A stretch of DNA of 64,000 nucleotides, taken from NCBI GenBank assembly GCA_002104905.1, contig MCFE01000100.1:108447-172446 (forward strand), written 5' to 3'. A program made the translations under genes and the position numbers. Each line of letters opens with the position of its first letter. The stretch's first letter is position 1. Shown one piece after another: positions 5,891 to 63,565 of this stretch. Below the pieces are notes generated by a model. It made no database searches, was not told the DNA's origin, and saw nothing but the letters and a program-made list of their open reading frames with translations. The DNA comes from Basidiobolus meristosporus CBS 931.73. Lineage: Eukaryota; Fungi; Basidiobolomycota.

Positions 5891-5943
5891 TGTCATTTCA
5901 TTAGCTGAATTTCATCTAGGATCTGAGTAATCTTTGCCATTGG

Positions 5944-7960: not shown

Positions 7961-10900
7961 CTCCCACTCAGCTAAATGTCCATACTGACTAGTCGTAATT
8001 TTGACCTAAGATATTCAAACTTGTCTCTAGCCAATGGTTTGGTAAATATGTCTGCAATCATTTCATCTGTAGAACAGTTAACTAAGCTAACTAAGTTATT
8101 CTCTATAGCTTCACGTATGAAATGATGTCTAATATCTATGTGCTTGGTTCTAGCATGAAAAGTTGGATTTCTACCTAATTGTATACATCCTTGATTATCT
8201 TGAAATAAAGTAATAGGCGTTTTTTGACATAGGCCTAAATCTGCAAAGAGCTTTCTTAACCACATTGCTTCTTTTGTAGCTTCACAGGCTGCAATATACT
8301 CTGCCTCTGTAGTAGAAAGTGCTACGGTTGGTTGCTTTCTTGAATTCCATGAAATTGCTCCTTTACAGTAAAGAAAGGTGTATCCTGTGGTGGATCTTCT
8401 GTCTTCCAAATTTTGTCCCCAATCAGCCTCAGAGTATCCCACAAGATCCTGTTCTGAATCCTTATAAGTGTATCTTAAGCAGATATCAGCAGTTTCTTTT
8501 AGGTATCTAAAAATCCGCTTAACTGCTGCAATATGATCAGATCCATAATTCTGATTATGTTGGCTGACAACTCCCACTGAATATGAGATATCTGGACGTG
8601 TTCCAAGCATGCTATACATCAGACTGCCGACCATAGATTGATAAGGAAAGTCAGGGCTTTCAGATGGCACCAAGCTCTCTTGATTTGGTTGAGTTTTGAC
8701 CAAGTTAAGGTTTGTCTCCATTGGGGTAGCTGCCGGTTTACAGTCTTCCAGTTGGTACTTCTTTAGTATATCTTGAATATACTTGGATTGGCTTATGGTG
8801 ATAGTCTGGGTACTTCTGTCTATGGAGAACTTAATCCCTAAGTAGTAACTAAGTTCTCCTAGATTGGACATCTTGAACTCCTTAGATAGGCTAGATTTAG
8901 TCTCTTCCAATGTTTCTAGGTTATTGGCGGCTAAAATAAGATCATCCACATATAGAGCTAATAGAACTGGATTTGCTCTATCTGGCTTATAGTATATACT
9001 ATAGTCAGCATTACTCCTTTTGAAACTCAAAGATTCCAAATAAGAATCTATCTTGCAATTCCAGGCTCTTGGTGATTGTTTGAGACCATATAGTTACTTT
9101 TTAAGCTTGCAGACCAAATGGGGGTTATCTTGGTCAACAAACCCATCAGGCTGGTCCATATACACGTCCTCATCAAGTTCTCCATTCAAAAATGCAGTTT
9201 TTACATCCATTTGATGAATAAAAAACTTATATTTGGCTGCAATAGCCAATATTAATCTGATGGAATTAAACTTGGCTACCGGTGCAAAGGTCTCAGTATA
9301 GTCAAGTCCTTTTGTTTGAGAGTATCCTTTGGCTACAAGTCTTGCTTTGTATCTTTCAATTGTACCATCAGCCTTGTATTTTGTCTTGAAGACCCATCTG
9401 CATCTAATTGATTTTTGGTTGATTGGTAATGTGGCTAAGTCCCAAGTTTGATTTTCCATCAGGGCCTGATATTCCTCAGTCATTGCAGATCTCCAAAACT
9501 TCATCTGAGGGCTATTTAGGGCCTCTTTTACAGTCTGGGGTTCATCAATATGGACTGAATAGGCATAGGCTAAGTTTGTGCCCTCATTGATATAGTAATT
9601 TGGGCTATTTCTTGTCTGATTGGATCTCCAGGCATTTGATACTGGAATGATCACTTCTGGGATATTCCTGGGCACTGATTCAGGCTGAGCCACAGTTGTA
9701 GAGTCCTCTGGAGTAAAAAAATTTTCACTGTTTTACTCTGACTCAATCCTGACAATTGGTGGACTTGAGATCAAATTTTTGTCATTATCTGATGTCATTT
9801 TTTGTGAAAGTTTTGAATTTTCCTCAAACAACACATCCCTGAGCTTGATTAGCTTCTTTGCTTTGGTATTGTAGAGTCTGTATGCTTAACTCTTATTGCA
9901 GTAGTCCAATAATATGCATTTTACACTGTTTGGCTCAAATTTTGACTGATTTCTGGGCAGATTCTTGGCATATGCTGTACATCCAAATATTCTTAGATGT
10001 TCTGCACTTGGTCTGTATCCATACCATGCTTCAAATGGAGTAGAATCAAAAGTATTCTGTTATAACTCCTGTTTTTAAGGTATACAGCTGTGGCAACTGA
10101 TTCCACCCAAAAATCATAGGATAATTTTTGATCATGGATCATAGATTTTGCCATATCAATTGTTGTTCTGTTTGCATGTTCTGCTACTCCATTTTGCTGT
10201 GGGGAGTATGGTACAGTAGTCTCTTGCTTTATCCCATGAATTTTGCCGAAGTGGATGAAGAGTTTTGAGGTATATTCTCCACCAATGTCAGAGTGTATTT
10301 TCTTGATTTTTTCACCAGTTTCTCTCTCCACCATGGCTTTAAACTCCCTAAGCTTAGACAGAGCTTCTTCCTTTCTCTTCATGAAGTAGACTCATGTGTA
10401 TTGTGTATAATCATCAATAAAAGTGATTAAATACTTCATCCCGCCTAGGGATAAATTTTGCAAAGGTCCACACAGATCTGAGTGAATTAGATCTAATTTT
10501 TCTTAGTTTTAATTAACCCAGAGCTCTTGAATGGTTGTCTGGCTTGTTTCCCATATATGCAGGCTTCACAGTGCTCCAAATTAGCTGGGGGACCAATTTT
10601 TACTCTGGAAATTAGCTGATCTTTGATCATTTTGCACAAATAATCATAGTTGATGTGTCCAAATCTCCTGTGCCAAAGTATTGGTGTCGCTTCATTTAAG
10701 TTACTTATATTGGCTTCCAAATGTGATGGAATATAAGTCAACTTGTATAGATTCTGATCTCTGATACCCAAAGTAATATGGGCACCATTTTGATCAGTGA
10801 TCTTGCATCCAGAATTGTCAAAGCTGAAACTGAGTTCTTCTGCAGTGGCCTTGCTTACAGATAGTAGGTTCTTGGCTATTTCTGGTACATAGAGTACTTC

Positions 10901-11933
10901 TTTGAAGGTCAGTGTATGGGTTCCTTCACTGCTTCTTAGATTTACTTGGATAGTTCCTTCTCCCACTGCATCAAGTGTTCTATTGTCACCTATGAAAACC
11001 TTCTTAATTAGAATTTCTTGATATTGGGTAAAAAGTTCTATTTGGTGTGTAAAGTGTTGAGATGCTCCAGAGTCAATATACCATGTCTGAGAATCCTTGT
11101 TTGTGGTCATATATAGTGCAGGTATGAGTAGTCTTTCTTCAGTTGTTGCAGCATTTTCATGTTCAGGCTTCTTTTGCTGATTATCTTTCTTTTTGAAGCA
11201 CCAGTCTAATATGTGTACTTTCCTTTTGCAGTAGTTACAAAACAGGTTGCTGTTACCTTTGTAGGGTCTTGGGTACCTCCTTTGTTGGTTATCATTGCTT
11301 ATTAAAGCATTTTCTTCTTCCTTCTTATTTGGGCTTGATTTTCTTAATTCTTCATCCAGGAGCCTTCTATATATGTAATATAAGGTCAAATCTTCAGTTC
11401 TGGTCTCAAGGGCTGATACAAGGCCCTGAAACTTGTCTGTCAGGCTATTCAGGATGGTAACTATCACATCCTCATCAGTAGTTGGTACACCCACAGATCC
11501 CATTTCATCTACCAGCAGGGAAATTCTGTTAATTAGATTTTTCATTTCTTCTCCTAGTAGCATCTTTGTAGTAAAGAATTTTTGTCTCAGATACATTTTC
11601 TGAGCAGCTGAACATGACTGGTAGGTGTCTTCTAATGCCTTCCAGGCATTCTTTGTCATTTTTGCTCTTGAGCATTGAATTAGCAATTTGTCCTTGACAT
11701 TAAGGCAAATGCAGTTAAAGGCACTTTGTTCTTTCTTCTGGTACTTTAAGGCTTCCTCTCCCACATTTTTTGGAGGGTATTCTTCTCCCATGACAATATC
11801 CCAATGGCCTCTTTGTTGTAGCAGCATCTTCATCTTCACCTTCCACACTTGGTAGTTAGATCCATCCAACTTTTCAGCAGAGTGAAATATTCCAGTAATA
11901 GCAGTAGTAGACATTGCAGAGAGTGACAGCTTG

Positions 11934-11945
11934 GGGCTCATAGCC
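11934..11945 (-). other. Copia PBS of half-tRNA-iMet type
   Basis: GGCTATGAGCCC directly after the LTR, one mismatch to GGTTATGAGCCC, which is complementary to the initiator-tRNA anticodon stem-loop. Its ATG is in frame with gag (MSPKLSLSAM). Confidence 0.75.
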
Positions 11946-12293
11946 TGTTGTAAGAGTTTTGGAGATATTGGAAGTGATTGGGAGAACAAGTAGATTATGT
12001 GGTTTTCACTTGATGATTTATTGAATGTAAAGTAGTATTTATACTTTTACATGATCTTGGCTTTACAAATATGTAAAATAGGCTAATGCAGGTCCCAAGA
12101 ACATGTGTGCAAAGTTTGGGGCTGTTTGGACAACTTTGAGAATTTGCATGTTGTAGGTACCTGGTATTTTGGTGAAAATATTTTAAGTAAATCCCAACAA
12201 GGAATTTGGTTGGTATTCACTAGGATTTGAAGGTAATGATCCAAGTGACTAAGCTAGGTGAATATTTAGGTGGAATTACAAATTTTTTCAACA
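11946..12293 (-). repeat. Copia 5' LTR
   Basis: TGTTG...CAACA termini, followed on the minus strand by the PBS and gag. Confidence 0.9.
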
Positions 12294-12841
12294 TATTCAA
12301 CATAAGATGAACATACTGCACTGTGTATCTGAGCTCAAATGAGATACCAATAGTATCCTGCTGACTCATATCACTGATGAGGCCAAGACATGCAGCCAGC
12401 ATGTGAAGATTGAAGAGGTGAAACTGTCACAGTCACTGATCATCACACAAAAGGTGATAAAAATACAACCTGCCTGTGAGATGGTGATCTTGTAAGAGAC
12501 ACCCATAGCTTGTTTGACAAATGAGTATATGATAACCCCAACAAAGGTATTGGACCATCTAGTAGGAATCTCAGTCCTTAAAGCATCAATACCACCAAAA
12601 TTTGAAGAGCAAAGCTTGAACTGCTTAGTAGTTAATCACATACAATGCACAGTGATACTACCTAGAGGAGTGTTGTTGTTGAACATACAAGAAGTTGACG
12701 GTAACAACCAAGTACCACCTACAGGCAAAGAGCCAAAAGAGGAGCCCCCTGAGCTGGATGTGGACCCTGGTCCACCTCCTGTGCTACAGGATAAATACCT
12801 AGAAGGAATACACCCACCTGTCCATGTATTCTCTAAGAACC

Positions 12842-13556
12842 AGGTGGAATTACAAACTCTTACAACAAGAACAACTAGATTAGCTGGTTTTCACCTAATA
12901 ATCTATTGAGTGTAAAAGTAATGTCTATACTTTTACATAAACCTGGCAAAAATAGCCCATAGAATATGCTTAGGAAGGTACCAAAAGCATATGAGCAAAG
13001 TTTGGAGCTGTTTGGACAACCTTAAGAAATCATGTGTTCTAGGTGCCTGACATTTGTTGTGATTATCATGTTGTCACCTAGATATTCATACTAACTAACT
13101 CACATAGATCTTATTCTGTGATTAGCATTCTGTCCTGACCAGACTTCTTGTTGGGACCTGGAATATTTTCAGCAAATTATCAGGTACCCAGATTATGACC
13201 TTTCTCAAGGTTATCCAAAAGACCCCAAGCTTTGCACACATATTCTTGGGACCTTGCTAAGCATATGCTATGTGCTGTTTTTGCCAAGACTATGTTAAAG
13301 TATAAACATTACTTTTACATTCAATAAATTATCAAGTGAAAACCAGCTAATCTAGATGTTCTTGTTGAAAAAATTTGTAATTCCACCTAAATATTCACCC
13401 AAGTCACTTGGATCATTACCCACAAATCTTATAGAATTCTGACCAAACTCCTTGTTGGGATTTACTTGGAATATCTTCATCAAAACATTAGGTACCCAGA
13501 ACATGAAAATTCCCAAGGTTGTCCAAGCAGCCCCAAACTTTGCCCACATGCCCTAA
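12842..13556. repeat. Cluster of diverged Copia-family LTR fragments in both orientations
   Basis: 12863..13068 and ~13170..13367 are mutually inverted LTR-homologous arms. A further LTR start, TGTTGAAAAAATTTGTAATTCC, begins at 13363. Confidence 0.8.
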
Positions 13557-14175
13557 GGAGGATCGATAACCAGAGCTGGGGTCCTCAGGGAGCGGGATAA
13601 AGCAGAAATAATGCCATGAGGATCATTATATGTGTGGAGGGATAGATTACGCATGGGCATCCATCGAGCGGTTTCGTGATAAGAGCAGAAGATTGAATAT
13701 TGTTATGGATTGGTAGAGAATGTTGGTGCCAAACACCCCCCCCCTCCAAGGTTTTGTGGCAACTGACATTAGGTTTGGGTGCGATTGAGGAAGTGTGGGC
13801 ATGGTATTGAATATATTACAGAAGGGCATGGTGCAGCGAGCACAGAGGTTTGAGTGATTGGCCAAATCTGCGGAGTTGAAGAATCATCTAAAATTATGAA
13901 ATTCGCTGACATATTGTACGATCGGCCGGGCACACCCTCCGATGTCGTTGGCAACACTCTGGACCTTCGAAACCGAACCCATGGCAATCTCGGAGGCTAC
14001 CAGAGCCATGAGGTCGGGAAGGCAGCCAAGGTTTGGAAGCGACGGGGATCCTCAATAATAGTACAACTTTATAGTGGTTTCTGAATACATAAGGTGAGCT
14101 AGACTTGCAAGTTAGAGATAGACTGGATAGTGTCACATAAAATACATTTTTCATGATCAAAAACTAAACGTAGGC

Positions 14176-44786: not shown

Positions 44787-45939
44787 TCATTGCAGCAGGT
44801 CAGCGTTTCGTCTCTGAATGCTTCTTAGGCAATGTGTGGAGCAAACTCGATGCAGTAGAGGTATCGCCATCCCGAACTGCTTGGACTTCTCTAGTATCTG
44901 GAGGGGAGACTCGAAAACAGGGCGATGGCATACTGTACAATGTATTAGCTGGTTGTGTCGAAGGAGTTTGTATAGTCTAGTGGGGAATTTCTCAGGAATC
45001 GACAGAGGGGGTTGGAGGCTAAGAATCAGCCGGCCAGTGATCTCTCGCAGGGAGGGAAAGTAGTCGGGGTCGTTTTCCTCCTCCAACTGGAACACCAATG
45101 AGTCCTCAGACACTTGCAAAACCAGGTTCGGTATCTCCAGGATCTCCGCTGGCAAGTATTCGATATGATTTCCGGTGAGGAAAAGGGAATGGAGTTTGGG
45201 CATACGACCGATGGACGCGGGTATTCTGGTCATCTCATTGTTGAAGGCAAAGATCGCTTCCAAAGCGACGCACTTTGCTACGCTCAAGGGTAAGCCTTTG
45301 AGCTTGTTGTGGGCCACGTTGAGTGCGTTGAGCTTGGTAAGCCCGGAGAGATCGGGCAGGCTGGTGAGAAGGTTTCCACGTAAGCCTAGTGCCACCAGTT
45401 CGGTCAGTTCCCCAATCTCTTTGGGTAATTCTCGGATCTCGTTGCGTCCTAGTCCCAAAACCTTCAAGGTGCTCGCCCAGCTTCGCAGCACTTCCGGAGG
45501 CACACTTGTCAACCGGTTGTCGCTAAAATCGCAAATCTCTAGCCTTGTCCACGCCGCACATTTCTGCGGGATCTCTTCCAGAAGGTTTCCCCGAAGCCGC
45601 ACCTCCTTGAGGTATACCAAATCAAACACCGCCTCGGGTAGCTGACGTAGGTCTGCCTGTTGCAAATTCAAAAGAACGATGCTTTGGTATGAAGGAGAAA
45701 GCTTGATAGCTCGATTTGGGTCTAGAGGGGGCGGTGGAAGGGTTAGAAACAGAACTGGTAAAGGGAGACCGCATCACCGCTGCCTTACTTCTTCTGGTCA
45801 GTGAGCCGAGTATTCGTAAAAGTTTATTCCACCTCGCGGCATTTCGATCTACCCACCAACTTGGACGGTGGCTGTTCAGTGCGATCCTTAAGCCGTCACA
45901 AAAAAGGAAGCTCTCGGGCTCCTGTAGAAAGGGTGACAT
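44787..45939 (-). CDS. Leucine-rich-repeat protein with C-terminal BC-box-like and Cys-rich domain (LRRC58-like)
   Basis: About eight LxxLxLxxNxL repeats, then FPSLREITGR and CTVC...PLLHRVCSTHC. An in-frame first exon 45789..45939 joins via a GTAAGG...CTAAC...TAG intron (45722..45788). Confidence 0.8.
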
Positions 45940-46372: not shown

Positions 46373-49300
46373 ATGAAGCTTCATCCTCTAAGTTCACAGG
46401 GAAGGAGCTGTGGACTACGGATGCTCCACACAATTGCCACGTTGGTTATTGTGGGGAGTTTTGCTGATCTGGGTAGATACGTAGCTGCCGAATCCCCTGG
46501 ATATGGTCCTCCAAATAACGGTGGCTATGGATCCTCTAATAGCGATGGTTATGGTATGGGAGAGCTCAACTCCTACGGCGTATCCAAACCACAGGGCGCT
46601 TATGGTTCTAGTTCCTATGACAGCTCCAGCAATGGCTACGGCAGCGAGAGTACAATGAGGTACGGGGGCAACGTAGTGAAGAAATATGTACCCGGTAAGA
46701 CAGTAAAGAGAAAGGTGTATGGGGGAGGGACCACCGTCAAAAAGATCTACAAGCCCGGAAAGATCACCAAGAAGTATATCCCCGGCCAAAAGGTGAAGAG
46801 AAAGGGATACGGAAGTACTACTATCAAGAAAATCTACAGACCTGGAAAGACCATCAAGAAGAAGAAGTACATTCCCGGCCAGAAGGTGAAGAGAAAGGGA
46901 TACGGAAGTACTACTGTCAAGAAGATCTACAGACCTGGAAAGACCATCAAGAAGAAGAAGTACATTCCCGGCCAAAAGGTGAAGAGAAAGGGATACGGAA
47001 GTACTACTGTCAAGAAGATCTACAGACCTGGGAAGACCATCACCAAGAAGAAGTACATTCCCGGCCAGAAGGTGAAGAGAAAGGGATACGGAGGTACTAC
47101 CATCAAGAAGATCTACAGACCTGGAAAGACCATCAAGAAGAAGAAGTACATTCCTGGTCAAAAGGTGAAGAGAAAGGGATACGGAAGTACTACTGTCAAG
47201 AAGATCTATAGACCTGGGAAGACCATCAAGAAGAAGAAGTACATTCCCGGCCAGAAGGTGAAGACAAAGGGATACGGAGGTACTACCATCAAGAAGATCT
47301 ACAGACCTGGAAAGACCATCACCAAGAAGTACATTCCTGGTCAAAAGGTGAAGAGAAAGGGATACGGAAGTACTACTGTCAAGAAGATTTATAGACCTGG
47401 GAAGACCATCAAGAAGAAGAAGTACATTCCCGGCCAGAAGGTGAAGACAAAGGGATACGGAGGTACTACTGTCAAGAAGATCTACAGACCTGGAAAGACC
47501 ATCACCAAGAAGAAGTACATTCCCGGCCAGAAGGTGAAGAGAAAGGGATACGGAAGTACTACTGTCAAGAAGATTTATAGACCTGGGAAGACCATCAAGA
47601 AGAAGAAGTACATTCCCGGCCAGAAGGTGAAGACAAAGGGATACGGAAGTACTACTGTCAAGAAGAAGAAGTACATTCCCGGCCAGAAGGTGAAGAGAAA
47701 GGGATATGGAGGTACTACTATTAAGAAGAAAATCTACATCCCTGGAAAGGTGGTTAAGGTCAAGAAGCCTTATGGACCTACCTATGGCTACAAGAAGATC
47801 CGTATCCCAGGGCAAACCAAGTACAAGAAGGTCAAGATCCCCGGGAAAACCACCCTCAAGAAGGTTCCTTACGACGCGGTCTACAAGTACAAGAAAACCC
47901 AAATCCCTGGCGGAACCACCAAGAAGAAGGTTAAGGTTCCCGGCGGATACGGTAAGAAGAAGGTTCCGATCGACGCGGTATACGGCAAGAAGAAGGTGTA
48001 CAAAGGAAAATACGGGGATTCCGAAAGCCAGTGGGGCTACAAGAAGATCCGTGTGCCAGGTGGCTTTACTAAGAAGAAGGTCAAGGTTCCTGATCAGTAC
48101 AAGTACAAGAAGGCCAAGATCCCTGGCGAGACCCAGTACAAGAAAGTCAAGGTTCCTGGGAAAACGGTTACCGAAAAGGTGCCTACCCCTCCAGTATACG
48201 GAACCAAGAAGATCCGGATTCCAGGGAAGACCGTCACCAAGCCTGATCCTTACAAGACCAAGACCATTACAGTCAAGAAACAGATCCCCCCACAGTACGG
48301 CTACAAGACCGTCGAGATCCCGGGAGGGTATACCACCAAGAAGCGGGTCATTCCGGGCAAAACCATTAAGAAGAAGGTTCCATACGGCAAGCAGTATGGC
48401 TACAAGAAGGTCTACGTCGACGGAGAGCCAGTCAAAACGAAGGTTCAGATCCCTGGGCAAACATACATCAAGAAGGTGCGCATCCCTGCGGAATACGGCT
48501 ACAAAAAGATCGCCGTGCCAGGAAAAACCACCAACAAGAAGTACAAAGTGCCCGGAGGAAGCAAGAAAATCAAGTACAAGAAGCCGGCTACTTATAAATA
48601 CGTGCGACGCAAGATCTCAGGTGGCACCACCACCAAGACGGTGCAGATTCCTGGCCAGACTCTTACAAGAAAGATCCCGACCAGTCCTAGATACGTTTAC
48701 AAGAGGATACCTGTTGAAGGAGGGTTCACCAAAAAGAAGGTTGCAGTCTCAGGTAAGACCATCAAGACCAAGGTCCCAACAAAGGCCGAATACAAGTATG
48801 TCAAGTACCAGGTTCCTGGTGGGACTAAGGTGGTTAAGACCCGAGTCCCCGGAAAGCTTACTCGCCAGAAATACAAGATCCCAGCCAAGTACGGCTACAA
48901 GACAACCAAGGAGAATGGACCACCAAGCTACAAGAAGATCTACGTTCCAGGGAAAACGATGGTCCAGAAAGTGCTTGTGCCAAAAGATAAGGATACTAAG
49001 GTTTATCTGCCACCGGATCAGGAATTTGTGGAGGAGTACTACAATGAAAGTATCGGTACTTTCGTACATAGACTCAAGCATTGCTCGTGGAATATTGACC
49101 AGAAGCAGTATAACTGTGTAATTGAGAAGGACTCGGTTGATGAGTATTTGCAGCCTGACTCCACCAACAGCCGTATCCCCCTTGAGCAACGCTACATTGA
49201 GGAGTACTACGATGAGATTAGCCAGAGCATCAGACGTCGTTTCAGAGTGTGTACCTGGAGCTCCGAAGCCAGAGACACTGTCTGCCACACTGAACAGATG

Positions 49301-51304
49301 CCCGATAGCCCGGATACTCCTCGAGTGCGGGATCCAGGAGAATTTGTCACGAATGTGTATCTACCACCAGACCGTGTCTACACCGATGAGTACTACGACA
49401 AGACTACCAACACTGTACGCAGGAGACTCAGAGTGTGTACTTGGAGTGTCGTGGACAAACGGTACAACTGCTCCTTCAGAGACATCGGTAACGACTTCAG
49501 GGTGGGTTACGGAGAGGAGACGGTGATTACCGAGTTCGTGGACACATGGAAGGGTGAAATCAAGTATCAGATCAGAAGTTGCAAGCTATCCTCGGAAGGG
49601 GCTGAGCGTGAGTGCACCGTCGATAACGGAGTAAGCTCAGATGGCTATAAGCCTTTGGGAGCAACGTACAAGGAGGGATATGCCAACGATATCATCCGTG
49701 GAAACACTCGAATCCGGTCGGCTTACTGGCCCGAGAAATCCTCGGCCAACCAACGGGTATACATCTATGAATACATCGACAAGCCTAGCAGGAAGTACAA
49801 GAGACGTCTGATGATCTGTCGCCTTGACAAGCAGTGGGAGTGCGCCACCTCCAACGACCACGTTCTAAGCTCGCCATTGGATATCATCCATGTAAACCCT
49901 CGCGGCCAGCAGCCCAACCTCATCAAGCTGGAAAGTCCTAATGAGGTAGAGAATATCAACCTGTCTGCCGGGAAGAACCCTCCAACTGAGCGAATCTACG
50001 TCCAAGAGTACCTGGACCCGATCACCAGCGCCATCCAGAGGAGAATCAAGGTTTGCACACTCGGCAAAAAAGCATGGGAATGTACGCTCTCTGACACTGG
50101 ATCCACTTACGGCCAACTGAGCCAGAGAGTGCTTGGTGACGATGAGGTGGAGACGGTTGACCTGTACTTCGATTACACCGGAAGAATCACCCGAAACACA
50201 AAAACATGTAATACCAAGTACAAGGACCAGTGCCAGAATGATTCATCCAAGTTTGGCGGATTCAAGCCCATGCTTGGGGAAAATAATTCTTCCGAGTTGT
50301 CGTTGTACAGTGGACTCAAGTTGCAGAATGTTTACTGGCCAGATATCGACCCAAAGGGCCCCGTTTCTGATAGAGTGTATGTATACGAATTCGTGGATCA
50401 GACTTCGCGCAAAGTCGAGAGACGCATAGTTTTGTACAGGTTTGACGCGGATTCTCGCTCCTGGAAGTACACCACCGTTCCAGGTGAAAAACTATCGAGC
50501 CATGTTGATTTCGACTCCCTCACTGTTGATGGTGCTGATGGTGACATCGTTTTGAACAACGGAAATAGCAGGGAGGTACTGCACTTCTCCACCGGCAAGG
50601 GTGCCCCCCCTACCGAAAGAATCTTTATTCAAGAGTATTTCGATGCTACCTCTGGTTTCATTCGACGACGAACAAAATTCTGTATATTCAACAACAGTTC
50701 CCAGAAATGGGATTGGTCCGATAAGGATGAAGAGCTAGGTGGCCTGGATCCTTACGCTAGTACTGTGCAACTTCCATCCGACAGAACATATGTTGATGAG
50801 TATGTGGATTCCGATACTGGCAGGAAAACTGTCAAGACCACTACCTGCAGATATGACATTAGCAAGAGAGATTGGGACTGCACGCGAAACGTGAGCGCTG
50901 GTTTCGACGAGGGCTGGGAGGGCCAAGACTCTGATGTTCAAATCAGTAGAAGCGACTCGGAGAGTGATTCTTTGAATAGCCTGGAATGGTCCAGCGAGTT
51001 TAGCTCCTATGACGATGACTTGCATAGTTTTGAGAGCGACTTGAGCTTTGATGAAGATGAGGACGATGATATTCTACTGGACGACGACTTTAGTTCGTCC
51101 TCTACAGAATATTTGTACAAAGCTCCTTTGAGCATAACATCCCACAAGGTGGCCCATCCCAACAAATCCCATGCTTCTGTGAAGCTCGTCGACAAGAAAC
51201 CAGGTGGTAAGGACATGAAGCCCGTCTACAAGAAACCAAGTGGTAACGACATGAAGCCCGTCGACAAGAAACCAAGTGGTAACGACATGAGGCCCGGTTA
51301 CTAA
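46373..51304 (+). CDS. Giant predicted secreted Lys/Tyr/Gly/Pro repeat protein with C-terminal Cys-pair repeats
   Basis: Intronless ~1,640-aa ORF. Signal-like MLHTIATLVIVGSFADLGRYVAA, GYG-rich segment, 31-aa repeats, degenerate KKVxIPG/YGYKK repeats, ten EY.D...RRR..C....W.C modules, acidic patch and 13-aa tail repeats. The function is inferred only. Confidence 0.85.
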   Translation: MKLHPLSSQGRSCGLRMLHTIATLVIVGSFADLGRYVAAESPGYGPPNNGGYGSSNSDGYGMGELNSYGVSKPQGAYGSSSYDSSSNGYGSESTMRYGGNVVKKYVPGKTVKRKVYGGGTTVKKIYKPGKITKKYIPGQKVKRKGYGSTTIKKIYRPGKTIKKKKYIPGQKVKRKGYGSTTVKKIYRPGKTIKKKKYIPGQKVKRKGYGSTTVKKIYRPGKTITKKKYIPGQKVKRKGYGGTTIKKIYRPGKTIKKKKYIPGQKVKRKGYGSTTVKKIYRPGKTIKKKKYIPGQKVKTKGYGGTTIKKIYRPGKTITKKYIPGQKVKRKGYGSTTVKKIYRPGKTIKKKKYIPGQKVKTKGYGGTTVKKIYRPGKTITKKKYIPGQKVKRKGYGSTTVKKIYRPGKTIKKKKYIPGQKVKTKGYGSTTVKKKKYIPGQKVKRKGYGGTTIKKKIYIPGKVVKVKKPYGPTYGYKKIRIPGQTKYKKVKIPGKTTLKKVPYDAVYKYKKTQIPGGTTKKKVKVPGGYGKKKVPIDAVYGKKKVYKGKYGDSESQWGYKKIRVPGGFTKKKVKVPDQYKYKKAKIPGETQYKKVKVPGKTVTEKVPTPPVYGTKKIRIPGKTVTKPDPYKTKTITVKKQIPPQYGYKTVEIPGGYTTKKRVIPGKTIKKKVPYGKQYGYKKVYVDGEPVKTKVQIPGQTYIKKVRIPAEYGYKKIAVPGKTTNKKYKVPGGSKKIKYKKPATYKYVRRKISGGTTTKTVQIPGQTLTRKIPTSPRYVYKRIPVEGGFTKKKVAVSGKTIKTKVPTKAEYKYVKYQVPGGTKVVKTRVPGKLTRQKYKIPAKYGYKTTKENGPPSYKKIYVPGKTMVQKVLVPKDKDTKVYLPPDQEFVEEYYNESIGTFVHRLKHCSWNIDQKQYNCVIEKDSVDEYLQPDSTNSRIPLEQRYIEEYYDEISQSIRRRFRVCTWSSEARDTVCHTEQMPDSPDTPRVRDPGEFVTNVYLPPDRVYTDEYYDKTTNTVRRRLRVCTWSVVDKRYNCSFRDIGNDFRVGYGEETVITEFVDTWKGEIKYQIRSCKLSSEGAERECTVDNGVSSDGYKPLGATYKEGYANDIIRGNTRIRSAYWPEKSSANQRVYIYEYIDKPSRKYKRRLMICRLDKQWECATSNDHVLSSPLDIIHVNPRGQQPNLIKLESPNEVENINLSAGKNPPTERIYVQEYLDPITSAIQRRIKVCTLGKKAWECTLSDTGSTYGQLSQRVLGDDEVETVDLYFDYTGRITRNTKTCNTKYKDQCQNDSSKFGGFKPMLGENNSSELSLYSGLKLQNVYWPDIDPKGPVSDRVYVYEFVDQTSRKVERRIVLYRFDADSRSWKYTTVPGEKLSSHVDFDSLTVDGADGDIVLNNGNSREVLHFSTGKGAPPTERIFIQEYFDATSGFIRRRTKFCIFNNSSQKWDWSDKDEELGGLDPYASTVQLPSDRTYVDEYVDSDTGRKTVKTTTCRYDISKRDWDCTRNVSAGFDEGWEGQDSDVQISRSDSESDSLNSLEWSSEFSSYDDDLHSFESDLSFDEDEDDDILLDDDFSSSSTEYLYKAPLSITSHKVAHPNKSHASVKLVDKKPGGKDMKPVYKKPSGNDMKPVDKKPSGNDMRPGY
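46765..47735 (+). repeat. Coding tandem array with a ~93-bp unit (KKKKYIPGQKVKRKGYGSTTVKKIYRPGKTI), about 10-11 copies
   Basis: Near-identical DNA repeats seen directly, with small codon-sized indels. Confidence 0.92.
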
Positions 51305-51591
51305 ATCCTGTTTCTTGCATATACATATACAGTAAAACACCATCCTTTGTTAGCCTCTTTTTTGAGAAATCACGTAATAAAATTGACGATGAAGTACACT
51401 TGCTGCAAACTTTTCCTTCAATCTGTGGCTCTTGATCAGAGTTGAACCTGTATCACATAACCTTCCGTAAACATCCCATTGTGCAATCGTAAAGTGCGGT
51501 TTTGGGTAAATGTCGTGCTCAAGCTTTCTTATGCAACACAAGATGCGACCACTCGTAGAAGGGTCCGAAGCCTACTAATCCATCAATCTTG

Positions 51592-53346
51592 CTGATGCTT
51601 CAATCGTCTTTAACTTCCCTTCTTGCGTTATTGTCACACAGGATCAAGCAAATAAAATGGTGGCTGCCCATGGAATGCAACCACACCATCATGGCTGCCG
51701 ACAACACTACAGAACTTTCAAAGTCAGTGCCTCATCCCATATCCTCTCTGCCTGTCACCACCGGTGACAAGTATCCAGATAATGAAAAAATCCATCCCGA
51801 AAGAGGCTTCTACCACCGCTATCGTCTATGGTTTCATCTGCTTATGTTTGTGGCTATCACTAGCTTAATCATAGCTGCATGGGTGCTACATGGAAATGAA
51901 ACGTTGGTCCTTTCGTTGCTATGGGCTTTCATATCCTTGAAGCTTATGTTCTATCACGTGCCTACCAAAATTCTTTCAAAGCCATTGGGCTTGTTCTTCG
52001 GTGCCATCATAAAAGCAGTGTCAGCTATCCCCGCAAAAGCTCGGCCTATTTTGGGTGTTCTACTTTCCGTTGCGCTGATCATATCGGTTGCCCTGGCTCT
52101 TCCTACAATCGAGGGCCATAGTAGTCGTTTAGACCGGTTGCGATCACTATTGGGGCTTGTGGTATTCTTGGTAATACTGTATGCCACCTCTAATAATCGC
52201 AAGCTCATCCCTTGGAGAACAGTTGTAGTTGGCATCTTGTTGCAGTTCCTTCTTGGGCTGTTCATCCTTAAAACATCGGTTGGTTATGATATCTTCAGCT
52301 GGTTGTCAAACATGTGCTCTACTCTTCTTCAGTTCTCAGGAGCTGGTTTGGCCTTTGTGACTACCAATGAAATAGCCAGTATTCCCATCATTGTCTTCAC
52401 AGTATTACCAGCAGTGATTTTCTTCGCAGCTATCGTTCGCATAGTGTACTACTTGGGGGGTATGCAGTGGATTGTCCGAAAATTTGCCTGGCTAATGGTA
52501 AGACTAATGGGTACTAGTGGCGCGGAATCTGTTGTTGCTGCCGCTTCACCATTTGTCGGTATGGGAGAATCGTCTTTGCTCATTCTTCCGTTCTTGGAGA
52601 CGTTAACTCGTAGTGAGCTCCACTCAGCCATGACATCAGGGTTCGCTACTATTTCAGGCTCCGTGTTGGTAGCTTATATATCGATGAAGGTTGATGCCCA
52701 GACCCTAATCACTTCGTGTGTCATGTCTGTTCCTTGCGGCTTGGCCATTTCCAAGATGCGTTTCCCAGAAACCGGAGAGCCGGTTACCAAGGGTGCGGTG
52801 CGGATCCCTGATGGCGGGGGAGAGAAAGAAGCAAATTTCCTGCATGCTGCCTCCAATGGTGCTGCCCAGGGTATCCAATTGGCGCTGTTGATTCTTGCCA
52901 CTGTCCTGTCATTTATCTCTCTGTTGACTCTGGTCAATGCCTTCCTCACCTGGTTGGGAAATTTCCTGAACATCGATCATCTGACACTGGAGCTGGTTGT
53001 CGGTTATCTGTTCTATCCATTCATGTGGTTGGTAGGAATTCCTACAGTTAATATGCTGGCGATTGCCAGACTAATGGCCACAAAAATGTTTGTCAATGAA
53101 TTCGCTGCGTTCGCTCAGCTTTCGCAACTGGCTGCTTCAGGTGTGCTCACAGAAAGAGCCAACTCATTGGCCATCTACTGTTTGTGTGGATTTGCCAATT
53201 TTGGATCCATTGGGATTCAAATAGGTGCCCTAGGGGCCATGGCCCCAAGTCGCAAGAAAGATCTTGCTGAGCTTGCATTCTCAGCTATGTTGTGCGGCAC
53301 TATGTCAACATTAATGAGTGCTACTGTGGCTGGGATGTTGCTGTAG
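51592..53346 (+). CDS. Concentrative nucleoside transporter (CNT/SLC28/NupC family)
   Basis: IPWRTVVVGILLQFLLG, ESVVAAASPFVG, MTSGFATISGSVL, GFANFGSIGIQIG; intronless. The start codon is uncertain. Confidence 0.95.
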   Translation: MMLQSSLTSLLALLSHRIKQIKWWLPMECNHTIMAADNTTELSKSVPHPISSLPVTTGDKYPDNEKIHPERGFYHRYRLWFHLLMFVAITSLIIAAWVLHGNETLVLSLLWAFISLKLMFYHVPTKILSKPLGLFFGAIIKAVSAIPAKARPILGVLLSVALIISVALALPTIEGHSSRLDRLRSLLGLVVFLVILYATSNNRKLIPWRTVVVGILLQFLLGLFILKTSVGYDIFSWLSNMCSTLLQFSGAGLAFVTTNEIASIPIIVFTVLPAVIFFAAIVRIVYYLGGMQWIVRKFAWLMVRLMGTSGAESVVAAASPFVGMGESSLLILPFLETLTRSELHSAMTSGFATISGSVLVAYISMKVDAQTLITSCVMSVPCGLAISKMRFPETGEPVTKGAVRIPDGGGEKEANFLHAASNGAAQGIQLALLILATVLSFISLLTLVNAFLTWLGNFLNIDHLTLELVVGYLFYPFMWLVGIPTVNMLAIARLMATKMFVNEFAAFAQLSQLAASGVLTERANSLAIYCLCGFANFGSIGIQIGALGAMAPSRKKDLAELAFSAMLCGTMSTLMSATVAGMLL

Positions 53347-56135: not shown

Positions 56136-59100
56136 GGGGGGGGGGAGACAGTCACCAACAGGTGAAATCTTTATTTCAGTTAAAACAAAGAAGCCAGCGC
56201 AACTGTTGTAGCTTTGATACAAGAGTGTGTAGCTGAGGGGAATTTGTAGATAAGTTAATAAGAAGTGATGATAGTTCTTCAGTGCTCAAGACACTGTTCA
56301 GTGGGAAGGGGGTAGCAAGAGAGGTAAGAATGACTTGTGAACAACATTAATGAGGGGAATGTGATAAGGATTGATATTCATCATAAAGGGAGTGTGCTGC
56401 TGCAGATATTGCTGCCAAAGGTCTGTCAAGTACTTCAGGTAGGCCAGCTTGGGCTTTTCTGACTGCAGAATATAGTGAGCAAACTTCTTGACTTCAGGAT
56501 CTCCAAGTATAGTTCTCCAGCAGGAGCCAGGTGTTGTGTGGTGTGTTCTCTTCCAGGCCTTAATCAGTGGGTTGTTGCAGTTGTGAAATCTGAGGTATAA
56601 TCTGGTTCTAAGGTAGAGAAGTCTGATCTTATAGGGCATAAGCCCAAATGCACCAAGAATAGCATGTCTGTAGGGGCATTCAGGCAAATGAGGCACCAGG
56701 GAGGTAATGCACCATACTGCAAACTTGTCAAGCTTAGTGCAGTCTCTAGAAGTAAGAGAGAGAAGTGGTAAGCCAAATTCCAGGACAGGGAAGACAAACT
56801 GCTTGAGTAGAAGGAGGCAGCTGGGAGCTGAAGTTGTAGGAGGAGTAACAGCCAGTAGCTTGTGGAGTGCCTGTCTTGCCAGGATAATTCTCTTCTTCAG
56901 GTGTGCTCCAGAGTCTAGTCCAGTAGGAAGGAAAGGAAAACCAAGTTATGTAGCAGAAACCTGAGCAGGTAGAGTGGAGTTCTCCAAGTTGATGGGAGAG
57001 CCCAAAGGTACTGTCTTTGCAATGGAAAGCTGGAGATTATTCTTCTGCAGATACTGGTGGATGGTCTGGGAGTCTTGTTGCACATTGGAGGAGGATATTC
57101 TGATGTCATCAGCAAAGAGAGTAACCAGGCAGTCAGCTGAGAGTCTTGGGAAATCATTCAGGAAGATGGCAAACAGTATAGGACCAAGCACAGAGCCTTG
57201 AACCACTCCATTAGGAACTCAGAACACAGCTGATTGCTCACTTGGGTGCAGAATTCTTGCTTGTGGATCCAGAAACAGAGACCTGACAAGGAGGGTGAGA
57301 GAGGTACTGGAGAAGCATTGCAACTTGGACCAAAGCAGATTTCTGTCAACTGAATCAAAGGCCTTAGTAATATCAAACAGAACAGAGGGATACTTGCACT
57401 GGAGAGAGTGATCTTGGCTAAGTATGACTGCATATTCCAAGGAGAGGCCAGGAACAAAGCCAAACTGTGCAGGATGAAGCTTGAGGGAGTTAGAGTAGAG
57501 CTCCTGAGCAAGCAGAAGCTCAAACACCTTTCTGCAGGTGGGCAGCAGAGATATTGGCCTGTAGGAGCTAGGATCCAGGTGCTTTCCTTTACCCTTGTAC
57601 AGTGGCAGAACATTTGCAAAGGACCATTCCTCAGGATTAGAAAGCTGGGCTGAGCATTGCTGAAACAGTGGAAGCAGAAGTGCAGACATGGCCTTGGTAC
57701 TAGTCTTCAGAAGCTCATAAGAGATTGTGTCCACACCTGGAGCAGTAGAGTTGGGAAGCCTCTTGAGCACATTATGGATTCTCCTTTGATCAAGTGCAAG
57801 TGGAATGGGCAGAGTCTTGAAGTCAGGATGAAAGCCAGGAGTTGAGTACTGCTTTGTAGAGAAGAAGATGTTAGCCAGCTGTTGTGTTGAAGGTAACTTC
57901 CTGGAAGAGGGCCTTATTGCCCTGTAGAGTCTTGATACTGTTCTTGTTATAGAGTTGGAAGATTGCAGAGGCAAAGAACTCATAATATGATCCCAGAGCT
58001 GAGTATGCAGAGTGTGGTGAATTGCCTTGGAGTGGTGTATTGCTGTCAGGAGGAGTTTCTCTGTTTTTGGGTTAGGGAAACTCAGGTAGCTTTGTTGCAG
58101 GGCTGAAACAATGGATTCCCATTTTCTTGAGGTAACAGCAGTAGTCTTGCATGGCAGTGAGAGGGAGGCAGAGACCAGAATCAGATGCTTCACAAAGAGC
58201 CAGGCATAGTTGAGATCATCTGGCAGAGAAAGTAGCAAACTGGCAAGCTTCAAGTAGTTCCCAAAGTCTTTCTTCTGATTCTTGGTAGCTTTGTGGGTGA
58301 GCACAGTAAGTTTTGGCAGCTTCTTCTTCACAACTGGTTGCATAGAAAGGGACCAGGCTGGGTGGTCAGAGGCTCTCAAGGATCCTAGCTCAGCTCCAGA
58401 GAATTGCTTAACTTCATTCACAAAGTAGAGGGCAGCAGCAGAAGGGCAGATCCAGTCAACACATCTTTTCTCAGATTGAGCACCTAGTGCTAGCAGATGG
58501 CTTTCTCTCAGGAAGTTCAGTAGGAATGTAGACCTTGGCTTCATTCTTGCAGTCAGAGTAGTCTTGTTCTCAGGATGGGGAATGTTGAGATCTCCAAGCA
58601 AGATAATAGGTGTTGATATAGATCGCTGGTATTGCTGAACTTTCTGGCATATAACTTGCACTTCCTGAAGGGCAAGACTTGGAGGCAGATAGCAGAGCAC
58701 CAGACTGATAGTTGGCAACTGGAGAGCAGCACAGTAAGGGGAGTAAAGAGGAACACAGAGCTGAGGAGTATTGATGGTAGAAGAGATGAAGCAGATAGAG
58801 GAGGTATTCTTTGTTCTAGGAGTAGAAAAGCAATATAGATTAGTCAAAAGTATAGAGGGTAGCTGGACATCAATCAAACACAAGAGGGAAAATCTTGAAA
58901 GAAGTCTCTCTAGAGTTGGTCTTGATGGCTGTATGCTGTTGCAGTTAAGCAACAGAACTTCAGGTAGTCAGGCAGAGGTTGTAGCTTCTTCAGAGGCAGC
59001 ATTGACAATGTGACCTGCAGAGTCCCAGAGCTCTTGAAATGGTGCATCACTTAAGTCAGCAAGGAGGGAAATGGCATGATTCTTGAGGAAGTATGCCACA

Positions 59101-60796: not shown

Positions 60797-63565
60797 CTAC
60801 TGTTGTAGCTTTGATACAAGAGTGTGTAGCTGAGGGGAATTTGTAGGTAAGTTAATAAGAAGTGATGATAGTTCTTCAGTGCTCAAGACACTGTTCAGTG
60901 GGAAGGGGGGTAGCAAGAGAGGTAAGAATGACTTGTGAACAACATTAATGAGGGGAATGTGATAAGGATTGATATTCATCATAAAGGGAGTGTGCTGCTG
61001 CAGATATTGCTGCCAAAGGTCTGTCAAGTACTTCAGGTAGGCCAGCTTGGGTTTTTCTGACTGCAGAATATAGTGAGCAAACTTCTTGACTTCAGGATCT
61101 CCAAGTATAGTTCTCCAGCAGGAGCCAGGTGTTGTGTGGTGTGTTCTCTTCCAGGCCTTAATCAGTGGGTTGTTGCAGTTGTGAAGTCTGAGGTATAATC
61201 TGGTTCTAAGGTAGAGAAGTCTGATCTTATAGGGCATAAACCCAAAAGCACCAAGAATAGCATGTCTGTAGGGGCATTCAGGCAAATGAGGCACCAAGGA
61301 GGTAATGCACCATACTGCAAACTTGTCAAGCTTAGTGCAGTCTCTAGAAGTAAGAGAGAGAAGTGGTAAGCCAAATTCCAGGACAGGGAAGACAAACTGC
61401 TTGAGTAGAAGGAGGCAGCTGGGAGCTGAAGTTGTAGGAGGAGTAACAGCCAGTAGCTTGTGGAGTGCCTGTCTTGCCAGGATAATTCTCTTCTTCAGGT
61501 GTGCTCCAGAGTCTAGTCCAGTAGGAAGGAAAGGAAAGCCAAGATATGTAGCAGAAACCTGAGCAGGTAGAGTGGAGTTCTCCAAGTTGATGGGAGAGCC
61601 CAAAGGTACTGTCTTTGCAATGGAAAGCTGGAGATTATTCTTCTGCAGATACTGGTGGATGGTCTGGGAGTCTTGTTGCACATTGGAGGAGGATATTCTG
61701 ATGTCATCAGCAAAGAGAGTAACCAGGCAGTCAGCTGAGAGTCTTGGGAAATCATTCAGGAAGATGGCAAACAGTATAGGACCAAGCACAGAGCCTTGAA
61801 CCACTCCATTAGGAACTGAGAACACAGCTGATTGCTCACTTGGGTGCAGAATTCTTGCTTGTGGATCCAGAAACAGAGACCTGACAAGGAGGGTGAGAGA
61901 GGTACTGGAGAAGCATTGCAACTTGGACCAAAGCAGATTTCTGTCAACTGAATCAAAGGCCTTAGTAATATCAAACAGAACAGAGGGATACTTGCACTGG
62001 AGAGAGTGATCTTGGCTAAGTATGACTGCATATTCCAAGGAGAGGCCAGGAACAAAGCCAAACTGTGCAGGATGAAACTTGAGGGAGTCAGAGTAGAGCT
62101 CCTGAGCAAGCAGAAGCTCAAACACCTTTCTGCAGGTGGGCAGCAGAGATATTGGCCTGTAGGAGCTAGGATCCAGGTGCTTTCCTTTACCCTTGTACAG
62201 TGGCAGAACATTTGCAAAGGACCATTCCTCAGGAGTAGAAAGCTGGGCTGAGCATTGCTGAAACAGTGGAAGCAGAAGTGCAGACATGGCCTTGGTACTA
62301 GTCTTCAGAAGCTCATAGGAGATTGTGTCCACACCTGGAGCAGTAGAGTTGGGAAGCCTCTTGAGCACATTATGGATTCTCCTTTGATCAAGTGCAAGTG
62401 GGATGGGCAGAGTCTTGAAGTCAGGATGAAAGCCAGGAGTTGAGTACTGCTTTGTAGAGAAGAAGATGTTAGCCAGCTGTTCTGTTGAAGGTAACTTCCT
62501 GGAAGAGGGCCTCATTGCCCTGTAGAGTCTTGATACTGTTCTTGTTATAGAGTTGGAAGATTGCAGAGGCAAGGAACTCATAATATGATCCCAGAGCTGA
62601 GTATGCAGAGTGTGGTGAATTGCCTTGGAGTGGTGTATTGCTGTCAGGAGGAGTTTCTCTGTTTTTGGGTTAGGGAAACTCAGGTAGCTTTGTTGCAGGG
62701 CTGAAACAATGGATTCCCATTTTCTTGAGGTAACAGCAGTAGTCTTGCATGGCAGTGAGAGGGAGGCAGACACCAGAATCAGATGCTTCACAAAGAGCCA
62801 GGCATAGTTGAGATCATCTGGCAGAGAAAGTAGCAAACTGGCAAGCTTCAAGTAGTTCCCAAAGTCTTTCTTCTGATTCTTGGTAGCTTTGTGGGTGAGC
62901 ACAGTAAGTTTTGGCAGCTTCTTCTTCACAACTGGTTGCATAGAAAGGGACCAGGCTGGGTGGTCAGAGGCTCTCAAGGATCCTAGCTCAGCTCCAGAGA
63001 ATTGCTTAACTTCATTCACAAAGTAGAGGGCAGCAGCAGAAGGGCAGATCCAGTCAACACATCTTTTCTCAGATTGAGCACCTAGTGCTAGCAGATGGCT
63101 TTCTCTCAGGAAGTTCAGTAGGAATGTAGACCTTGGCTTCATTCTTGCAGTCAGAGTAGTCTTGTTCTCAGGATGGGGAATGTTGAGATCTCCAAGCAAG
63201 ATAATAGGTGTTGATATAGATTGCTGGTATTGCTGAACTTTCTGGCATATAACTTGCACTTCCTGAAGGGCAAGACTTGGAGGCAGATAGCAGAGCACCA
63301 GACTGATAGTTGGCAACTGGAGAGCAGCACAGTAAGGGGAGTAAAGAGGAACACAGAGCTGAGGAGTATTGATGGTAGAAGAGATGAAGCAGATAGAGGA
63401 GGTATTCTTTGTTCTAGGAGTAGAAAAGCAATATAGATTAGTCAAAAGTATAGAGGGTAGCTGGACATCAATCAAACACAGGAGGGAAAATCTTGAAAGA
63501 AGTCTCTCTAGAGTTGGTCTTGATGGCTGTATGCTGTTGCAGTTAAGCAACAGAACTTCAGGTAG
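60797..63565 (-). CDS. LINE ORF2: APE endonuclease plus reverse transcriptase
   Basis: EN motifs LNCNS, CYLPP, LGDLN, VDW, SDH. RT motifs APGVD, YRPISLL, QFGF, DITKAFDSV, QGSVLGPILF, FADD, YLGF. No ATG before the EN domain. Confidence 0.95.
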   Translation of the reverse strand, partial: LPEVLLLNCNSIQPSRPTLERLLSRFSLLCLIDVQLPSILLTNLYCFSTPRTKNTSSICFISSTINTPQLCVPLYSPYCAALQLPTISLVLCYLPPSLALQEVQVICQKVQQYQQSISTPIILLGDLNIPHPENKTTLTARMKPRSTFLLNFLRESHLLALGAQSEKRCVDWICPSAAALYFVNEVKQFSGAELGSLRASDHPAWSLSMQPVVKKKLPKLTVLTHKATKNQKKDFGNYLKLASLLLSLPDDLNYAWLFVKHLILVSASLSLPCKTTAVTSRKWESIVSALQQSYLSFPNPKTEKLLLTAIHHSKAIHHTLHTQLWDHIMSSLPLQSSNSITRTVSRLYRAMRPSSRKLPSTEQLANIFFSTKQYSTPGFHPDFKTLPIPLALDQRRIHNVLKRLPNSTAPGVDTISYELLKTSTKAMSALLLPLFQQCSAQLSTPEEWSFANVLPLYKGKGKHLDPSSYRPISLLPTCRKVFELLLAQELYSDSLKFHPAQFGFVPGLSLEYAVILSQDHSLQCKYPSVLFDITKAFDSVDRNLLWSKLQCFSSTSLTLLVRSLFLDPQARILHPSEQSAVFSVPNGVVQGSVLGPILFAIFLNDFPRLSADCLVTLFADDIRISSSNVQQDSQTIHQYLQKNNLQLSIAKTVPLGSPINLENSTLPAQVSATYLGFPFLPTGLDSGAHLKKRIILARQALHKLLAVTPPTTSAPSCLLLLKQFVFPVLEFGLPLLSLTSRDCTKLDKFAVWCITSLVPHLPECPYRHAILGAFGFMPYKIRLLYLRTRLYLRLHNCNNPLIKAWKRTHHTTPGSCWRTILGDPEVKKFAHYILQSEKPKLAYLKYLTDLWQQYLQQHTPFMMNINPYHIPLINVVHKSFLPLLLPPFPLNSVLSTEELSSLLINLPTNSPQLHTLVSKLQQ

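Follow-up and report, generated by a model that had tools for sequence, protein, structure and literature searches.

The cement proteins Pc-1 and Pc-2 of the sandcastle worm and the mussel foot proteins Mfp-1 and Mfp-5 are secreted, basic, rich in Lys, Tyr and Gly and built of short tandem repeats. In plants, YxY motifs are cross-linked by peroxidases, and in fungi an amplification of N-proximal repeats that varies from species to species is typical of surface proteins and adhesins. We describe here a gene of Basidiobolus meristosporus CBS 931.73 whose predicted product, a protein of 1643 amino acids (aa), shares some of these traits and combines a long array of Lys/Tyr-rich repeats with a block of Cys-containing mini-domains. 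The gene lies on a 64,000-nucleotide stretch of contig MCFE01000100.1 (GenBank assembly GCA_002104905.1, positions 108,447 to 172,446 of the forward strand), referred to below as the window, and all positions are given relative to its first nucleotide. An initial annotation of the window, made from the sequence alone, had described a giant secreted Lys/Tyr/Gly polycation of glue-like composition. Our analysis points to a secreted, non-enzymatic protein of the extracellular matrix or cell surface that is specific to Basidiobolus, a reading to which we give about an even chance, and it establishes that the gene is real and under selection.

Organisation of the repeat protein

The open reading frame (ORF) begins with an ATG at 46373 and closes with a stop codon at 51302-51304 (Table 1); residues are numbered from the Met encoded at 46373. 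The initial annotation had placed the end of the protein at 48990. The same ORF runs on to 51304 and adds 767 aa of a different, Cys-containing sequence, a part in which ten Cys-pair mini-domains and an acidic tail had been missed.

At the N-terminus, the signal-peptide-like start that had been noticed is borne out by a hydrophobic core, TIATLVIVGSFA, which is the sole hydrophobic segment of the protein (Kyte-Doolittle maximum of 1.52 over 19 residues and of 2.08 over 12). The value of 1.52 falls under the usual trans-membrane value. A low-complexity linker follows; residues 1-120 contain 19% Gly, 15% Ser and 9% Tyr, the Gly/Ser/Tyr richness extending over residues 41-100.

Residues 101-876 are composed mostly of Lys, Gly, Thr, Ile or Val, Tyr and Pro, Thr representing about 11% of the repeat block. 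They carry a net charge of +228 and 76 Tyr, the commonest spacing between Tyr being 11 residues. The composition of residues 41-100 and 101-876 agrees with the earlier description of a GYG-rich segment followed by about 800 aa dominated by K, Y, G, P, T, V and I. Two blocks of repeats can be distinguished. In the first, Tandem Repeats Finder (TRF) located a 93-bp unit present in 9.7 copies at 46769-47666, with 91% matches, 0% indels and a score of 1516, in keeping with the ten or so near-perfect 31-aa repeats reported initially. At the protein level, 11 units anchored on YIPGQKVK were found, mostly spaced by 31 aa, and three sub-units, YIPGQK, GYG and YRPGKT, compose each 31-aa unit. Acidic residues had been called rare in the perfect repeats; residues 101-470 contain no Asp or Glu at all, against 132 Lys and Arg. 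Lysine makes up 31% of residues 121-470 and 25% of residues 471-880.

The second, degenerate block has a period of 33, or three times 11, residues (autocorrelation peaks at 33, 11, 66 and 22; PG-to-PG spacings of 11, 22 and 33). Each 33-aa unit contains two sub-units of consensus Y/T-K-K-(V/I)-x-(V/I)-P-G-(K/G/Q)-T-x-x-K and a third of the form P-x(2-4)-Y-(G/K)-Y-K-K. There are 31 (V/I)PG turns, which follow one another at intervals of 11-22 residues within a Lys-rich frame. The degenerate KKVxIPG/YGYKK units with YKYK and YxY motifs described in the initial annotation were recovered, with counts of 5 YGYK, 2 YKYK and 14 YxY. These repeat features are far beyond chance. Since both types of unit follow the same three-part plan, the 31-aa unit is a form of the older 33-aa unit that was amplified recently.

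Beyond the repeats, the mini-domains share the consensus R-x-Y-V-x-E-Y-x-D-x3-G-x3-R-R-x3-C-x6-10-W-x-C, and the Cys residues are nearly confined to pairs at fixed positions of the 44-aa unit. A profile hidden Markov model (HMM) built locally from the mini-domain detected 10 copies in the 1643-aa protein, 11 in the relative P0001 and 10 in P0002 (both presented below), at 19-68 bits each. The block, of about 635 aa, contains a duplicated module of about 190 aa, has a net charge of about -11 and carries 7 of the 8 N-glycosylation sequons of the protein. Mini-domains 8 and 9 (50354-50731) depart from the pattern, the former having lost both Cys and the latter having its second Cys replaced by Trp; in the B. 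ranarum copies, mini-domain 8 has a single Cys. These three losses make the Cys total odd, leaving one potentially free thiol in the mature protein, which could allow an intermolecular disulfide. The C-terminus ends with a 36-bp unit repeated 3.2 times at 51180-51296 (TRF, 92% matches), which encodes the KKPSGNDMKPVD-type units. The final residue is Tyr in the 1643-aa protein, P0001 and P0002 and differs in P0003.

Table 1. Coordinates of the repeat-protein gene and of its parts (positions in the window).
Feature	Position	Strand	Residues	Remarks
Candidate core promoter, TATA-like element tatttataa	46310..46318	+		about 55-63 bp 5' of the start codon; sequence reading
Whole coding sequence, single exon	46373..51304	+	1-1643	1643 aa and stop; uninterrupted ORF, collinear with homologues
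Signal-like N-terminal segment	46373..46468	+	1-32	basic n-region, core TIATLVIVGSFA, small residues ahead of Asp33
Gly/Ser/Tyr-rich low-complexity linker with GYG	46469..46672	+	33-100	composition; mildly acidic, pI 4.3
Near-perfect repeat block	46673..47782	+	101-470	about ten 31-aa units; TRF and unit list
Degenerate repeat block	47783..49000	+	471-876	about twelve 33-aa units; segmentation and position profiles
Ten 44-aa Cys-pair mini-domains and linkers	49001..50902	+	877-1510	alignment, local HMM; 17 Cys
Acidic Asp/Glu/Ser tail	50903..51142	+	1511-1590	net charge -24; acidic tails in all homologues
Short basic C-terminus	51143..51301	+	1591-1643	three 12-aa KKPSGNDMKPVD-type repeats; hydrophilic
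Candidate polyadenylation signal, AATAAA	51376..51381	+		about 70 bp 3' of the stop; sequence reading

Relatives in Basidiobolus, selection and genomic setting

We searched 5.8 billion proteins by a word-based method, using as queries the C-terminal half and the degenerate repeat block, and obtained three proteins only, each labelled 'hypothetical protein'. Identity is 54% over 1083 aa for P0001 (B. ranarum KAK9760491.1), whose N-terminal part is cut off by a contig end, 49% over 1337 aa for P0002 (B. ranarum K7432_006122, 1540 aa) and 38% over 1022 aa for P0003 (ORY06435.1, 1249 aa), which comes from B. meristosporus CBS 931.73 itself. A HMMER search with the mini-domain profile against 1.84 billion cluster representatives gave genuine matches to the clusters of P0002 and P0003 only; four weak matches (P0004-P0007), in which 12-25 profile positions were matched, proved to be unrelated simple repeats. 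Within the collections searched, the family is thus restricted to Basidiobolus, each species having two or more paralogues. The search for homologues that the initial annotation had proposed was in this way productive, while the structure searches proposed with it gave no meaningful match.

Pfam and NCBIfam were scanned with the whole protein, with the C-terminal half and with the homologues; nothing exceeded the cut-off, and no enzyme or other known domain was detected. No match was accepted from these scans or from the Protein Data Bank (PDB) sequence searches, in agreement with the initial statement that no named family could be recognised, and the Pfam and NCBIfam scans likewise gave no assignment to a known non-adhesive family, which had been named as an outcome that would speak against a glue. 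Below the Pfam cut-off of 20.3 bits, 'wnt' matches recurred in two homologues (P0001 583-663, 19.4 bits; P0002 1017-1103, 16.7 bits); these fall on mini-domains 6-7 and on the linker DTGSTYGQLSQ, which is conserved, and probably reflect noise from the Cys pattern. A sub-threshold BP74_N match among the homologues was also rejected as Cys and composition noise. Searching the PDB sequences with the mini-domain profile gave a best E of about 1, to the WD-repeat protein SQT1, and the match of the polycationic block to the designed 31-residue toroid repeats dTor_12x31L is an artefact of a shared period and Lys content. A feature search of the ESM Atlas found no usable match for either half. The ESM Atlas contains the exact 1643-aa sequence, which was not found in a 15-billion-protein collection. 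As the word-based searches also found no protein more than 90% identical to it, the gene may be missing from the public B. meristosporus protein set or be wrongly modelled there.

The family members share a common order, namely a hydrophobic start (conserved in both full-length homologues, P0002 and P0003, and missing in the truncated P0001), 33-aa PG/PG/YxYK repeats, Cys mini-domains and an acidic tail. The 1643-aa protein is collinear with P0002 throughout and with the partial P0001 from residue 652 or so, and in all four members the charge blocks keep the same signs, positive, mildly negative and negative. Divergence is greatest towards the N-terminus. The linkers of the homologues are rich in Pro, Ser, Thr and Asn, unlike the Gly/Ser/Tyr linker found here, and a hypervariable segment lies between the linker and the conserved repeats. 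This segment holds the 31-mers, with a charge of about +12 each, in the 1643-aa protein, five or six charge-neutral 11-mers (KNDYxPGKTIE) in P0002, and a non-repetitive Lys/Glu/Ser/Thr/Pro stretch in P0003.

Conservation against the homologues is uneven among residues. In the degenerate block it reaches 82% for Pro, 75% for Tyr, 66% for Lys and 60% for Gly, and falls to 17% for Arg and 7% for Gln, a pattern from which selection appears to keep the frame of turns, Tyr and charge. In the C-terminal half, the B. ranarum proteins retain every one of the 17 Cys, the behaviour expected of extracellular disulfides, along with 83% of Trp and 70% of Tyr. GYG, which occurs 17 times in the 1643-aa protein, is absent from all three homologues and is thus a recent and gene-specific feature. 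This weakens the main link that had been drawn with mussel and sandcastle-worm cements; the signature at the level of the family is the (V/I)PGxT turns together with YxYK.

Selection was also assessed within the repeat array, on nine in-register 31-aa units comprising 18.3 synonymous and 65.7 non-synonymous sites. The distinct variant codons were synonymous in 10 cases and non-synonymous in 4, which corresponds to an omega-like ratio of 0.11 (binomial P = 1e-4). The 31-aa repeats are under purifying selection, and the gene is real and selected. Codon use of the ORF is host-like, and as a proxy for expression it is uninformative.

Two other ORFs overlap the repeats, one on the minus strand at 46415-48460 (681 aa) and one in another frame of the plus strand at 47706-49121 (471 aa). 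Both are shadows of the AAG-rich repeat and not genes; the homologues conserve only the plus-strand frame starting at 46373. Their sequences are Leu/Ser-rich or Arg/Ser/Thr-rich, and they could be annotated wrongly by automatic gene calling. Upstream, a leucine-rich repeat (LRR) protein is encoded by a divergent ORF at 44787-45671 on the minus strand (LRR_8, E = 2e-21), about 700 bp of intergenic sequence separating the two genes. Directly downstream, a single uninterrupted ORF of 585 aa at 51589-53346 on the plus strand encodes a concentrative Na+/nucleoside transporter of the CNT family (Nucleos_tra2_C, E = 2e-73). Around the gene described here, the window contains genes of ordinary eukaryotic types, for V-ATPase A, a RuvB-like protein, SPT16, a PPR protein, a PUF protein, the LRR protein and the nucleoside transporter, as well as copia and LINE elements. 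Positions 1-14000 have 38-42% GC and include a copia-type gag/pre-integrase ORF (10493-11989, minus strand); composition shifts sharply at 14 kb, where the region of the PUF-repeat gene (14-16 kb) has 56% GC and a GC3 of 0.81. LINE-type ORFs with endonuclease and reverse transcriptase lie at 57219-58952 and 60797-63550 on the minus strand, the first being truncated.

Predicted structure and comparison with described systems

AlphaFold2 was run on each half with four-sequence alignments. The mean pLDDT was 52 (pTM 0.35) for the C-terminal half and 40.6 (pTM 0.16) for the repeat block, and for this reason only the secondary-structure pattern was used. At this low confidence, each mini-domain is modelled as three antiparallel strands, about 9, 12 and 7 residues long and separated by turns of four residues; the Cys pair lies on strands 2 and 3. 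The repeat block is modelled as short paired strands with turns of two to four residues, which, at a pLDDT of 40.6, lends weak support to the long beta-hairpins suggested by the initial annotation. The block may be extended or loosely structured, disorder being as possible as beta-hairpins. Foldseek against the PDB returned only DDB1 propellers, with a meaningless TM of about 0.1 and rmsd of 25-30 Å, and in a wide structure search with VIA-align all matches had Z of 4.5 or less and were to a generic three-stranded meander, at the level of noise. Whether the C-terminal half could instead fold as a beta-propeller was also weighed, and the results neither support nor exclude it.

The YGYK and GYG motifs recall the GGYGYGGKK-type unit of the sandcastle worm, and the combination of a basic block and acidic material is reminiscent of its coacervate cement. 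The repeats of Mfp-1 and Pc-1 (AKPSYPPTYK and VGGYGYGGKK) are nonetheless not found, a motif search of the 1643-aa protein giving no PSYP, PTYK, GYGYG or YGGKK, and the word-based searches bringing up no protein of this kind; P0001 and P0003 each contain one PTYK-type motif. The protein shares no sequence homology with the Mfp and Pc proteins, from which it also differs by a much lower Gly content, by high Val, Ile, Thr and Pro, and by ten putative Cys-pair beta domains that these proteins do not possess.

Extensins and plant proline-rich proteins (PRPs) are likewise basic, rich in Lys, Tyr, Pro and Val, and periodic, and VYKYK-like and YxY motifs are common to them and to the Basidiobolus protein. 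The likeness to extensins proposed earlier stands as far as the cross-link-type YxY (14) and YKYK (2) motifs are concerned, bearing in mind that so short a motif fits many other proteins, and fails for the defining motifs: SPPP is absent from the 1643-aa protein and from P0001-P0003, and the PPVYK and PPVEK pentapeptides of plant PRPs have no match in the 1643-aa protein. Extensins moreover rely on a polyproline scaffold where this protein has Pro-Gly turns; hydroxyproline-arabinosides are not expected, and the lineage is unrelated. Elastin-like (V/I)PGxG pentapeptides are also absent from the 1643-aa protein. By these comparisons the protein is no homologue of the extensin, PRP, elastin, mussel or sandcastle-worm proteins, but an analogue of them by composition.

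Fungal surface proteins of the Als, Flo, PIR and glycosylphosphatidylinositol (GPI) types likewise have an N-terminal signal, long tandem repeats that vary, richness in Thr and no enzymatic domain. Their repeats are Ser/Thr-rich and neutral or acidic, while those of the Basidiobolus protein are polycationic, and it shows no Pfam adhesin domain. A GPI-type C-terminal signal was not found, because the C-terminus is hydrophilic (...NDMRPGY) and the only hydrophobic segment is N-terminal, and the PIR repeat Q(I/V)xDGQ(I/V/P)Q has no match in the protein. Bacterial rods of the SasG/Aap G5-E type are similar in their tandem three-stranded beta-sheet units, which are only predicted in our case; the structural match to SasG is weak (Z 3.7) and at noise level, the sequences are dissimilar, and our units carry a Cys pair. 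Among fungal proteins, the closest in kind are the tandem-repeat surface proteins, but the polycationic chemistry found here is unusual.

Alternative readings and possible role

For the proposed reading as a secreted matrix or surface protein, an extracellular setting is supported by the fixed and conserved Cys pairs, the sequons, the Thr-rich repeats and the lack of any hydrophobic segment besides the signal-like start. The block-polyampholyte layout, the want of a catalytic domain and the repeat amplification peculiar to each species also fit this reading. Within this reading, a general role in the wall or surface matrix is put forward tentatively, and a role as sticky spore material, for instance the capilliconidial adhesive, is rather doubtful. 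The adhesive or wall-hardening function favoured by the initial annotation is plausible by analogy. Secretion, disulfides, binding, cross-linking and the biological role are all what we infer from the sequence.

After removal of the signal peptide, the mature protein would be a charge-block polymer. Its first block, of about 780 aa, would consist of roughly 22-24 units of 31-33 aa, each with two Pro-Gly turns and a Tyr pair in a Lys-rich, Val/Ile-alternating frame. The second, of about 635 aa, would form ten three-stranded beta-sheet units, each most likely with one disulfide, as a mildly acidic stalk or binding array. The polycationic block may bind polyanions by charge, such as acidic polymers of the wall, acidic proteins that are secreted, or arthropod, bacterial and substrate surfaces, and its regularly spaced Tyr would offer cation-pi, hydrogen-bond and hydrophobic contacts and be available for oxidative cross-linking. 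Pairing of the acidic C-terminal part with the basic blocks of neighbouring molecules could then produce a self-assembling coat or glue. We discarded cross-linking between Gln and Lys by a transglutaminase, since no residue of the repeats is less conserved than Gln (1 of 15).

Several observations weigh against this proposal. The n-region of the putative signal is unusually long (16 aa) and its core is of moderate hydrophobicity; motif and Pfam scans found no GPI signal, PIR motif, wall-anchoring or carbohydrate-binding domain; neither half receives a confident AlphaFold2 fold; and the extreme charge and the GYG motifs are not conserved among the relatives. In addition, so Lys-rich a protein would be very sensitive to proteases in the gut habitat unless glycosylated or cross-linked.

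Four other explanations were weighed. The protein could be a polyprotein processed by Kex2, in which cuts after Lys-Arg would release about ten cationic 31-residue peptides of antimicrobial or signalling function. With such precursors it has in common the signal-like start, the repeats in tandem and the KR found in most of its perfect units, at residues 142, 173, 204, 235, 266, 327, 389 and 441. This reading is improbable: the KR is present in only 8 of the 11 YIPGQKVK-anchored units, Thr replacing Arg and removing the site in the other 3 (KT), and it is conserved neither across the array nor in the homologues, the amplified repeats of P0002 having no dibasic site and P0003 having no such repeats. 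The conserved parts of the family, the degenerate block and the Cys domains, are nearly devoid of KR spacing, and a very large protein of 1643 aa with 635 aa of conserved, non-repetitive and folded-looking domains is unlike the known small precursors.

We consider it hardly likely that the protein is not exported, its hydrophobic stretch being a membrane anchor or irrelevant and its Lys block binding intracellular polyanions in the manner of histone H1 or nucleolar proteins. The Lys-rich runs do resemble nuclear localisation and nucleic-acid-binding sequences, and the first 30 residues are more conserved than is usual for signal peptides. Strict conservation of the Cys pairs in a small repeated domain nevertheless speaks for an oxidising environment outside the cell; the hydrophobic stretch is short and, at 1.52, under the usual threshold for a membrane helix, and the Pfam scan found no nucleic-acid-binding domain.

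A wall elastomer of the apparatus that discharges the spores, with elastin- or resilin-like recoil from Pro-Gly and cross-links through Tyr and Lys in the subconidial swelling, would accord with the 31 regularly spaced (V/I)PG turns, with the conserved Tyr and with the biology of Basidiobolus, in which conidia are launched when the pressurised subconidial swelling ruptures (PMC13370150). The absence of VPGxG-type arrays, the high charge of the block and a Gly content far lower than in resilin or elastin make this very improbable. Finally, that the ORF is non-functional, held open by chance by a lysine-codon minisatellite or decaying as a pseudogene, is barely credible, for although AAG-rich low-complexity repeats keep several frames open, as the shadow ORFs illustrate, and the exact sequence is missing from the 15-billion-protein collection, the protein is 49-54% identical, across upwards of 1000 aa, to its B. 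ranarum counterparts, in which every Cys is conserved, and it has a synonymous excess in its repeats, host-like codon use and an exact copy in the ESM Atlas.

Returning to the secreted matrix or surface protein, a more specific form would be the polycationic component of a fungal Lys/Tyr glue, for example in the capilliconidial droplet, setting by charge-driven coacervation with acidic Tyr/Asp-repeat proteins and then by Tyr cross-linking through a tyrosinase or peroxidase. This form is unlikely. A 1994 paper by Dykstra and Bradley-Kerr on the capilliconidial adhesive droplet is cited in PMC5126542. We know of no account of the chemistry of the glue that sticks these spores to arthropods. Open-access papers and preprints yielded no publication on the repeat protein, and none on an adhesive or wall-matrix protein of Basidiobolus or of other zoopagomycete fungi. 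Members of the Basidiobolaceae do possess capilliconidia tipped with an adhesive-covered beak, as well as zygospores with thick, two-layered walls (PMC13370150).

If the protein were an ordinary wall filler, the value of these results would be limited to the annotation of four 'hypothetical proteins'. Two sequence modules without family assignment nonetheless emerge, one the Cys-pair mini-domain of 44 aa, the other the PG/PG/YxYK repeat of 33 aa. A selected, block-charged Lys/Tyr polymer, apparently specific to Basidiobolus, provides a concrete candidate for an adhesive or wall protein in this genus, and possibly a genetically encoded template for bio-inspired adhesives or coacervates. Should the Lys/Tyr glue prove true, a terrestrial fungus would have evolved, by convergence, a counterpart of the cements of sandcastle worms and mussels.

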